A stretch of 46,446 bases of DNA, taken from the NCBI RefSeq assembly GCF_001194135.2, contig NC_068983.1, positions 122,569,834 through 122,616,279 of the forward strand, read 5' to 3'. The position numbers and the translations under genes are program-made. A model generated the notes under the pieces. The model saw nothing but the letters and a program-made list of their open reading frames with translations. It was not told the DNA's origin and did no database searches. Positions within the stretch are counted from its first letter, which is position 1; every line of letters starts with the position of its first letter. This document shows, in pieces, positions 12,644 through 14,393 of the stretch. The stretch comes from Octopus bimaculoides (lineage: Eukaryota).

Positions 12644-14393
12644 TGTAACGGAAATGCAGTTCGTTGCAGTCGAGGGTCACCAATGTAACGGTAATGGTTG
12701 AAGTGGAATCAGTGGTCACCAGTGTAACGGTTGTTGCTGCAGATGTGCAAGATGAACGAAGAACGGTGATCGAAGTAGTAAAGAAATATTTATTTACCGT
12801 TACTTTAATATAAGCCATACCTCGAAGGGTAGGTTAGTGTAATAGTATAACACAGTTCGTAAAGCATGCAAGGTAAAAAAAAAAGTTAATTTCGGCCTGT
12901 ATATGTGTGTATACGATCTTGTAGCAGTATATAGACAGAGACCTAGGGTCTTACAGAGACGTGTTGTGTCTAAGAAGGCGCAGGGTGCATGGAAAACAAG
13001 CAAGAGAAGCATGGTGTGGTGCAAGAATGTGACAGTATAAGCATGCAGGTGCATGTATGAACGTTGTGTGGTGCAGCAAAAGAAATGAATTGTACAGAAA
13101 TTAGTAAACAAAAGGTGGAAAACTTAGCTGGAAATAGTGCCCTTGTTAACAGTCTATTGCTGAAAGTGAAAAAAAGATGTGCATGCAACGAAAAAGAGCT
13201 GTTGAAAGTCGATATGAGAGTCTTATATATATGAAAAAGTTCGTAGATAATGCAGACGAAAAGCATGTGTGCCAAAAAGGTTGCATGTCCGGGCTTTCGT
13301 ATTTTCTTCCAGTTAAATTGGGTTCCATGGTCAGCGAATTCTTTCTGCGTCAGCAGGATTGCATTGTAGTGAAGTTAATCACAGTTTGCATCGCGGTATA
13401 ATGCTTTTTGTTGCGCGTACTGTAACAAGTGGAACGAGGGCGCATCTTGGTAGTGACGAAGATTGTCGTTCTTTTCCTTAGGTTTAGCGATTGTTGATAT
13501 GAACACTGTAGTTCTTTAGTTCGAAGTCAACAAAATTCAGCGGCATGTAGCATCAAAAGGAAGTAATTCTTTCTAGACGGGTGACCAATGTAACAATAAT
13601 AGCATTCGTTGTTGCATCAGTAGGAAGTAGTTCTTTCTAGTCGGGGTTACCAATGGTAGACACCGTGGTTTTACGAGAAGGAATGAGTGTTCTTAGTCGG
13701 GTCACCAATGTAACGGCTTTTGTTAAGGTGTGGGTTGCCAGTGTAATGGTTGTAAGATGAACGAAGAACAGTGATCGAAGTTGTAAAGAAATATTTATTT
13801 ATCGTTACTTTAATAAATGCCATACCACGATGGATAGGTTAGTGTAAAACATGCAAGGTAAAGAAAGTTAATTTCGGCTTGTATATGTGTGTACACGATC
13901 TTGTAGCAGTATATAGACAGAGATATGCTAATATTACAGAGAAAAGAAAGTGAGCTAGTGAAAGTTATAGAGTCGAGGAAGGTTGTGTCTCATAGTTGTC
14001 TGGTTGTAACCTTCTTTTTCCCTCTGTTCCTTTGTCTTTAGTGGCTGCTTGCTTGTGACCATGACTCTAGATGTCCGTTCACTAACTAATTTTTCCTTGC
14101 CAAATTCTGGTATTTATATCTATCCAAAACTAGTTAGAAAGATAGACATATTATTGAGAACAATAGATTTCGTTGGTGGTACCTGTTATCTCAATTCTAA
14201 CTTTTGGTGGCCTAGAAGAGGTTAGAAGGGTCAAGTGGCAAGGCATTATTCTGCTTAGTGAAGGCACATGGTAAAGGTAACTGCTGTCACACAAAAAAAC
14301 TATTGCTTTACCATGAGAAAAGTACTGTTGAACTGTTAGGTGACATTTGGCTATCGAGGATCTAATCCACGAATCCTGCATGAAGCCACTACA
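12644..14393 (-). mobile_element. Solo-LTR-like or LTR-derived element (family B) with internal duplication and repeated PBS-like modules
   Basis: Minus-strand termini TGTAGTGG..CCGTTACA, TATAAATA ~270 bp in, AATAAA in a duplicated ~190-bp block (13756-13923 and 12750-12940). Flanked by (TG)n and (TA)n. Confidence 0.7.

Follow-up and report, generated by a model that had tools for sequence, protein, structure and literature searches.

Tandem copies of an LTR end and a tRNA-Trp-type primer-binding site in an old TRIM-like element of Octopus bimaculoides

A stretch of 46,446 nucleotides from Octopus bimaculoides (RefSeq assembly GCF_001194135.2, contig NC_068983.1, positions 122,569,834 to 122,616,279 of the forward strand; hereafter the window, numbered from its first letter) carries on its minus strand a short element with two long terminal repeats (LTRs), in which a sequence resembling the border between an LTR and a primer-binding site (PBS) is repeated in tandem. 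It is probable that this array consists of copies of the U5-end/PBS junction (U5 for unique 5′ region) of an old tRNA-Trp-primed element resembling the terminal-repeat retrotransposons in miniature (TRIMs), and that the copies were made by reverse transcription, through read-through into the primer and a switch back to the LTR end. Each unit would then join the LTR 3′ terminus (..CCGTTACA), in a short copy, through a single spacer base to a complementary DNA (cDNA) of the 3′ part of tRNA-Trp, now decayed.

The array and its units

Four units were found on the minus strand between 13750 and 13576, each following the pattern ..TTACA, then T or C, then TGGTNACCC... The LTR-end motifs of the units (TTACA or CCA) end at 13742, 13709, 13654, and 13589, with successive units starting 33, 55, and 65 nt apart. 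The original prediction, made from the letters of the sequence alone, had written these four units exactly so, and the terminus CCGTTACA which it assigned to the element indeed ends at 12644. Unit 1 (13718–13750) reads ACCATTACA-C-TGGCAACCCAC and is the most divergent. Unit 2 (13660–13717), GCCGTTACA-T-TGGTGACCCGAC-TAAGAACACTCATTCCTTCT, has a 13-nt PBS core with one deletion, and its stretch GAACAC..CCTTCT is collinear with the tRNA-Trp antisense sequence. Unit 3 (13596–13659), which has the best PBS core, reads CTACCA-T-TGGTAACCCCGAC-TAGAAAGAACTACTTCCTACTGAT and continues for about 25 nt up to TTGTTACA. Unit 4 (13533–13595), which by position is the LTR/PBS junction, aligns with the CCGTTACA that closes the lower LTR copy (12644); its LTR end at 13589 (TTGTTACA) is followed by a spacer T at 13588, by the PBS-like TGGTCACCCGTC from 13587, and then by TAGAAAGAATTACTTCCTTTTGAT. 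A degenerate fifth unit in the leader (13532–13476, minus strand, TGTTGACTTCGAACTAAAGAACTAC) is weak, being visible by eye and in the MAFFT alignment only. As for the box said to follow most units, TAGAAAGAA(C/T)TACTTCC does stand after units 3 and 4, and unit 2 has the variant TAAGAACACTCATTCC, while neither form follows unit 1.

The repeated units are real and non-random. With up to two mismatches, TTACAYTGGYNACCC has six matches in the 46-kb window against 0.91 expected, and none of the shuffled sequences reached this number (0/100). All six matches fall into two homologous clusters, four at 13746–13579 and two at 12727–12674. Units 3 and 4 are 83–85% identical over 46–53 nt; the PBS core (about 75% identical) is not better kept than the rest (about 88% in the tail). 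The multiple alignment of all units gave the consensus CCGTTACA-T-TGGTGACCC(C)GAC-TAGAAAGAACTAC. In the units, the center of GGTNACC varies (G, A, or C) and the palindromic arms are kept. Since the units differ in length and are decayed, Tandem Repeats Finder (minimum score 30) made no call in 13476–13750, and the array is no minisatellite of constant period. An Rfam search of the sequence gave a sub-threshold microsatellite-type microRNA match alone.

The tRNA-Trp-derived part

Which tRNA is reflected in the PBS part? The antisense sequence of human tRNA-Trp with CCA, which begins TGGTGACCCCGACGTGATTTGAACACGCAACCTTCTGATC / TGGTGACCCCGACGTGATTTGAACACGCAACCTTCTGAT (bioRxiv 10.1101/400127), was used as the reference. 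The unit consensus TGGTGACCCCGAC is identical to its first 13 nt, and TGGTCACCCGTC lies 1 nt past the TTACA at 13589, as a PBS should. With the human reference, the prediction that the units are an LTR terminus followed by a tRNA-Trp-type PBS is thus supported. In the individual units, the core matches at 12/13 positions in unit 3, over 13 nt with one indel in unit 2 and in unit c_b of the lower LTR copy, and at 8/8 in unit c_a of the same copy, 8/9 in unit 4, and 7/9 in unit 1. The best unit matches are not continuous to 18 nt, and collinear traces reach to about nt 39. Beyond the core, GAACACTCATTCCTTCT of unit 2 corresponds to GAACACGCA-ACCTTCT of the tRNA-Trp antisense (p = 0.017), and the consensus of units 2–4 has a perfect CCTTCTGAT at the offset expected from the tRNA-Trp antisense (p = 0.007); a tRNA-Gly control for the collinear extension was not significant. 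Exact copies of 18, 24, and 32 nt, found in invertebrate-type loci, show that the tRNA does not differ in this part there. No tRNA gene was found in the window or in 17 loci.

It was also considered whether a unit is a near-full-length tRNA-Trp cDNA, with CCGTTACA coming from the D arm. This found no support, as the semi-global alignment compared with shuffles gave p = 0.06–0.08 for units 2 and 3 and no significance for the others.

The host element

Two direct LTR-like repeats about 1 kb apart, at 13938–13589 and 12955–12644, form an LTR pair. In local blocks, the copies are 91–95% identical; over 193 nt the identity is 82%, and with gaps counted it is 75% over 268 nt. A terminal inverted repeat TGTAA...TTACA fits both of them. 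The upper ("5′") LTR copy (13589–13938, minus strand) runs from TGTAAT... to ...TTGTTACA and has a TATA-like box, an AATAAA, and units 1–3 in its U5 part. The lower ("3′") LTR copy (12644–12955, minus strand) runs from TGTAAG... to ...CCGTTACA, ending exactly on the LTR-end motif. It includes two minus-strand units: c_a (12692–12730), CCGTTACA-C-TGGTGACCAC, is the counterpart of unit 2, and c_b (12644–12691), CCGTTACA-T-TGGTGACCCTCGAC-TGCAACGAACTGCATTT-CCGTTACA, whose last part is the element end, is the counterpart of unit 3 and the end of unit 4. Opposite unit 1, the lower copy has a shortened remnant, as seen by alignment and inspection. The terminal TTACA of the lower copy (12644) aligns with the TTACA of unit 4, and there is no homology to the upper copy past 12644.

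Since the units are present in both LTR copies and the lower copy ends on CCGTTACA, they predate the insertion and most likely lay in U5. The array is older than the divergence of the two LTR copies. In both LTRs, units 1–3 most likely belong to U5, and by position the LTR/PBS junction falls on unit 4. The AATAAA lies about 30–45 nt before the first TTACA-type ends (13751 and 13742), and U5 would be about 15–25 nt long if the LTR ended there, versus about 175 nt for an end at 13589. The original prediction had read all four units as junctions, which holds by position for unit 4 and probably not for the other three; the two units and the terminal CCGTTACA of the lower LTR copy, as well as the degenerate fifth unit at about 13532–13476, had been overlooked.

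The host element is an old, decayed, non-coding TRIM-like LTR element of about 1.3 kb with LTRs of about 310–350 bp. The internal region (12956–13588, minus strand, about 630 bp) is non-coding: its open reading frames (ORFs) of 101 and 103 amino acids have no Pfam domain, and tblastn gave no gag/pol match. The element is described as short, non-coding, and TRIM-like because just 630 bp without a domain or gag/pol similarity lie between the LTRs; it is not an autonomous Ty3/gypsy element, and its designation as a Gypsy element could not be demonstrated. The window copy is decayed and has no present function. No further copy of the element was found in the window. A chance ORF of 72 amino acids spanning the LTR and the units, used to seek other copies, had no homologue. 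The family-specific double-unit pattern had 0 matches in metagenome and viral contigs, and the junction 20-mer had 0 matches in viral contigs. A purine-rich run AAAGACAAAGGAACAGAGGGAAAAAGAAGG (14010–14039, minus strand) is located about 70 nt upstream of the upper LTR copy, without a counterpart before the lower copy, and could be the polypurine tract (PPT) of an upstream unit.

Similar arrays in metagenome contigs

Is such an array confined to this locus? Metagenome contigs were scanned for two TGGTGACCCCGA strings 25–55 nt apart. The scan yielded 20 contigs (loci are given L numbers below), at least 16 of which have eukaryote-like GC and same-strand arrays, with 2 to about 32 units and periods of 27–64 nt. 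The general two-site pattern had 0 matches in viral contigs. In the metagenome arrays, the unit is a stretch of the tRNA-Trp antisense and then a repeat of 9–16 nt of the local LTR terminus (e.g., ..CCACATATAT). L004, L005, L006, L008–L018, L020, and L023 were taken as the comparison set, and the window units have the characters of this group of arrays, in which a U5 end is joined to a tRNA-Trp cDNA and same-strand units, at least two in number, stand where the 5′ LTR meets the leader. Near-identical contigs were recovered from different samples in the cases of L004/L017, L005/L016, and L011/L020. As far as checked, no outcome that would have spoken against the original prediction was seen: relatives of the pol remnant (below) have a PBS of the same type, the units match tRNA-Trp, and the array occurs in both LTR copies.

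The tRNA-Trp-derived part is 14 nt in L010, 18 nt in L006 and L012, 21 nt in L009, 24 nt in L005 and L018, 32/32 nt in L004, about 36 nt in L015, and about 40 nt in L014, where part of the T loop is skipped. In L004, a complete Ty3/gypsy element, three units directly follow the 5′ LTR. L014, a miniature LTR pair whose members are 95% identical and enclose 970 bp, has two to three at the same place; the 3′ LTR of either locus stops short of the units. L009, L014, and L018 have homologous U5 ends and yet different lengths of the tRNA copy. Even adjacent units of L009 differ in the form of the copy, one having GACGTGAT and its neighbors GACAAAGAACAC. The T-loop-skipped form GAC(G/T)AAGAACAC is common to unit 2 of the window and several metagenome loci. 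Some arrays (L005, L006, and L012) have three or four perfect sites of 18–24 nt.

Several of these contigs show further features. In L011 (1131–2664) and L020 (1115–2648), about 32 tandem units of 31 nt (TGGTGACCCCGACGAAGAACACTCCATATAT) have a higher-order spacing of 31/62/94–96/154; to judge from the unit, this is a junction unit expanded into a minisatellite. The contig also holds an insect-type non-LTR reverse transcriptase remnant. In L009, L014, L018, L004, and L015, an inverted repeat ATATGTGGTACTGTGG ... CCACAGTATCCCACATAT is present in the U5 end about 60 nt before the first unit. Its arms could pair at the very border of LTR and PBS, in a stem that recalls the U5-IR (inverted repeat) stems of retroviruses. 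Two marine metagenome contigs, L021 and L022, have a satellite with a 16/32-nt period and TGGTGACCCCGAT, in which the match to the tRNA-Trp antisense stops after 12–15 nt; they were left unclassified. L007 and L019 (GC 0.66–0.68) were set aside as unrelated bacterial repeats.

The neighboring pol remnant and its relatives

A Ty3/gypsy pol remnant of about 650 bp (16655–17306, minus strand), comprising RNase H (Pfam RT_RNaseH) and the integrase zinc finger only, is located 2.7 kb upstream of the element, outside the LTR pair. This distance is unreliable because a run of N lies between them at 14596–14730; other N runs (assembly gaps) were found at about 2495–2520 and about 27708–27879, and each of the three adjoins microsatellites. 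The remnant could not be linked to the LTR pair, as the window contains no integrase core, reverse transcriptase core, or third LTR. The remnant has 1234 homologues, and an exact look-up of the pol ORF found no record. It is 61–63% identical to the pol of L003 (tblastn).

The relatives of the remnant that were examined (L001, L003, L024, and L026) have a single PBS of the tRNA-Trp type, and not the different PBS that would have spoken against the original prediction. L003 has LTRs 95.8% identical, a PPT, the target-site duplication (TSD) CATC, and the PBS TGGTGACCCCACATGG. The PBS of L001 is TGGTGACCCCGAATGG. The PBS match is 10–12 nt in these two, and CCTTCTGA follows soon after the PBS in both. 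L024, from Apostichopus japonicus (GCA_002754855.1), has LTRs 99.8% identical and a PBS matching at 18/18 positions, and L026 has a decayed tRNA-Trp complement of about 40 nt ending in CCTTCTGAAT. Since these relatives have a single PBS, the array is no clade-wide requirement. In L001 (6–6947 and 12787–15510), the Ty3/gypsy element sits in a long tract of satellite DNA that repeats about every 790 bp and has a sub-period of about 395 bp.

Possible origin of the array

How could the array have arisen? Normally, the PBS amounts to 18 nt copied from the primer. During plus-strand strong-stop synthesis, which runs from U5 into the attached tRNA, the usual stop at 18 nt would sometimes be passed, and synthesis would switch back to the last 10–25 nt of U5, so that the junction would be copied anew. 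The last copy would stop normally, so that plus-strand transfer would go ahead, and the whole tail would be copied by the minus strand. The expected product, 5′ LTR – (tRNA copy – U5 end)n – PBS – interior with a normal 3′ LTR, matches L004 and L014. Judging from the anatomy, any unit could serve as the LTR/PBS boundary, since every unit has an integrase-type end (TTACA) and a PBS. In the next cycle, tRNA-Trp might bind any unit, and downstream priming would put the upstream units in U5 and hence in both LTRs, which is the structure of the window element. After such a shift of the boundary, the LTR would still end in TTACA for integrase. Later slippage or unequal exchange may change the number of units or expand the arrays, as in L011 and L020.

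The metagenome arrays argue for this origin. Stretches of 24–40 nt whose lengths differ between neighbors are hard to produce by duplication of a PBS and easy by repeated copying of the tRNA, and the differences in length and form among L009, L014, and L018 argue for repeated tRNA copying and not for one inherited duplication. The serial duplication of the priming junction originally proposed was thus the right general idea, while the analogous arrays point to reverse transcription and not to plain duplication as its source.

Several observations weigh against this reading. The template-switch step is a model, of which no intermediate has been observed. The reference for the tRNA part was the human tRNA-Trp; in the window, the tRNA copy past 13 nt is statistically modest and relies on paralogous units. 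From the Octopus bimaculoides genome, the evidence covers one copy, that in the window. In this copy, the PBS is present among the hallmarks of a TRIM, and the PPT and TSD were not found. Ahead of the lower LTR copy, up to 12955, the letters read ..CTTAGACACAACACGTCTC and include no purine run that could be a PPT. The flanks (..TTCTC / CACAT..) gave no TSD of the usual 4–6 bp, alternative LTR starts included, but chance-level 4-mers only. The LTR start of the window element is uncertain because TCTC and AGACACAAC are common to both LTR copies upstream of TGTAA, where weak homology continues. Moreover, in the two metagenome loci that offered an LTR pair for comparison (L004 and L014), the units come after the LTR, and the placement of units within U5 draws on the window locus alone.

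The last of these points, together with the missing TSD, the missing PPT before the lower LTR, and what lies upstream of the upper copy, a purine run and weak homology, would suit a different anatomy. The LTR may end before the first unit (at about 13751 and about 12746), so that the units belong to the leader, and the locus may have arisen by tandem LTR-leader-internal duplication or be a chain (LTR-int-LTR-int) that happens to be cut off at 12644 in its last member. The truncation would then have to fall exactly on the TTACA end of a unit, a coincidence of about 1 in 100 to 1 in 200, and only about 15–25 nt of U5 would remain after the AATAAA; nor is there more element sequence past 12644 in the window. 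I consider this anatomy rather unlikely. About as doubtful is a plain DNA-level minisatellite, in which the U5 end, the PBS, and the start of the leader were duplicated by slippage or unequal exchange in the chromosomal copy. Units 3 and 4 do resemble each other along their whole length (83–85%), the non-tRNA leader included, and the arrays of L011/L020 (about 32 units) and L021 show the higher-order periodicity typical of satellite expansion. Such duplication leaves unexplained, however, the tRNA stretches beyond the 18-nt PBS (32/32 in L004 and about 40 nt in L014), the neighboring units in which tRNA copies of differing length or form stand on one U5-end repeat, and the constant inclusion of the LTR terminus within the unit borders.

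Could the extra units have been retained for a function, by offering spare or alternative places for priming, or by drawing off, as decoys, 3′ tRNA-Trp fragments that would block the true PBS? Arrays recur across several LTR families and sources, some (L005, L006, and L012) hold three or four perfect sites of 18–24 nt, and engineered vectors with two PBSs are reported to initiate at both. Nevertheless, the PBS core of the window units is not better conserved than the tail (about 75% versus about 88% between units 3 and 4), and close relatives do well with one PBS, so that selection for a function seems improbable, and more so than the two explanations above. For active ancestors, redundant priming sites are plausible and a decoy role is possible. 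There is very little to recommend the idea that the repeats have nothing to do with a PBS, the motif containing GGTNACC either serving for protein binding or having arisen by chance in an LTR of low complexity. The variable center of GGTNACC with its constant palindromic arms would fit this idea. Against it, each copy stands immediately behind the terminal motif of the LTR, the consensus agrees with the tRNA-Trp antisense at all of the first 13 nt and the match extends collinearly, and the analogous arrays hold up to 32 nt of exact tRNA-Trp antisense.

The probable origin by read-through and switch-back may be extended, though only as a speculation that I think is more likely wrong than right by a good distance. 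Junction arrays might be a general, heritable "stutter" of reverse transcription in tRNA-Trp-primed Ty3/gypsy elements, with interchangeable junctions and a moving LTR boundary. Spare sites could buffer decay of the PBS or silencing by tRNA fragments, and some arrays would become satellites. Such a stutter would involve read-through past the T-loop block as far as the anticodon loop, or a 3′ tRNA half from whose end synthesis runs off.

Other features of the window

A second LTR-like stretch (40539–41038, minus strand) has a TGTAG.. start, a TATA box, and an AATAAA. It contains TGGTGACCCCCC at 40621 and, 70 nt away, TGGTAATCCTGAC at 40551, both of them PBS-like strings of the tRNA-Trp type. 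The latter is preceded by ..CACTATAAA-A, which resembles the LTR ends of L001 and L003. This stretch may have another PBS-like string inside U5. No partner LTR was found in the window, and the comparison of this second PBS site (about 40.5–41.0 kb) with the U5 of L001 and L003 was marginal (scores 37 and 43 versus shuffle maxima 41 and 42).

Direct repeats of about 1.1 kb (5101–6221 and 9685–10875), 94–98% identical and about 4.6 kb apart, may reflect segmental duplication or a further element of the LTR type. Long arrays with an 8-bp period, as well as an extremely AT-rich stretch (GC 0.16 at 10–11 kb), occur in the interval and reach over the second repeat (8379–8677, and from 9908 onwards). 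A remnant of a Mariner-type transposase (11030–11671, minus strand; Pfam Transposase_1, E = 1e-27) lies about 1 kb past the lower end of the TRIM-like element. Two clusters (3063–4472 and 22041–24036) consist of a repeat of about 240 bp resembling a short interspersed nuclear element (SINE), in 6–10 copies with 60–85% identity and with the motifs GGCACAAGGCCTGAAATTTGGGGG and CTGGTACTTATTTTATCGACC; a stretch resembling a copy of it is located just past the element end (about 12330–12600). A direct repeat of 265 nt (18666–18930 and 19712–19976, 1046 nt apart) is 100% identical; it was either duplicated very recently or produced by the assembly. At 28664–32336 on the plus strand, where the GC content of the window is highest (up to 0.53), there are several ORFs of 150–200 amino acids.

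Significance and comparison with known systems

If the proposed origin is true, the arrays are natural fossils of two error steps of reverse transcription usually known from engineered systems, namely copying of the primer tRNA past the normal stop and a template switch at the U5/tRNA border. The LTR boundary would not be fixed but could jump between spare junctions. This would bear on the annotation of LTR/PBS boundaries, on the priming competence of non-autonomous elements, and on the origin of some minisatellites. The arrays are also a concrete substrate for the question of 3′ tRNA fragments acting on the PBS. The window locus itself is of low practical importance because the copy is old and inactive. 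My literature search, whose scope fell short of most subscription journals, found no description of natural tandem LTR-end/PBS arrays.

In canonical Ty3/gypsy elements of the tRNA-Trp type (L024, L001, L003, and L026), the PBS lies 1–2 nt past the LTR end and starts with TGGTGACCCC, and the window units share both characters. The canonical PBS complements the CCA end, the acceptor stem, and the start of the T stem of tRNA-Trp. Canonical elements have one PBS, whereas the window element has four to five junction units, three of them in the LTR, with about 13 nt clearly matched.

The ta-TRIM of taeniid cestodes is an example of a TRIM (PMC4558846). Like the window element, TRIMs are very short, non-coding LTR-internal-LTR structures (about 1.3 kb here) with a PBS next to the 5′ LTR, presumably dependent on autonomous elements. 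TRIMs measure less than about 1.5 kb in total, have both a PBS and a PPT, and occur in many dispersed copies with TSDs. The LTRs of the window element (about 310–350 bp) are at or above their usual range, and its PPT and TSD were not found. I know of no description of a TRIM with a junction array.

The nearest experimental precedent is the engineered retroviral vectors with two PBSs that Voronin and Pathak reportedly described (J Virol 2004;78:5402, cited in PMC3902901). Both sites are said to initiate, and a downstream start to leave the upstream PBS in U5. Vectors and window element alike have more than one PBS per RNA; the vectors are artificial, whereas the window array is natural and multi-copy and includes the LTR end each time.

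Extended or bipartite contacts between primer and template are known in Ty1 and Ty3, and unusual primers include the half-tRNA of copia and the anticodon stem-loop of Ty5 (PMC5371799). As in Ty1 and Ty3, complementarity to the primer tRNA goes beyond the 3′ terminal 18 nt in the clade of the window element. A box CCTTCTGA(T), which matches the variable loop and anticodon stem of tRNA-Trp, recurs after the PBS in the window units, L001/L003, L014, and L026. The extra complementarity in this clade is collinear with the tRNA and looks like a copied 3′ half of it with an internal loss, not like boxes that evolved separately.

In plant Ogre/Tat-type elements, tandem repeats in the untranslated regions of LTR retrotransposons seed satellites. 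The present arrays are similar in being short, non-coding parts of LTR elements that are able to expand (about 32 units in L011/L020), and they differ from the Ogre/Tat repeats in that the repeated unit is the priming junction itself, with tRNA-derived sequence.

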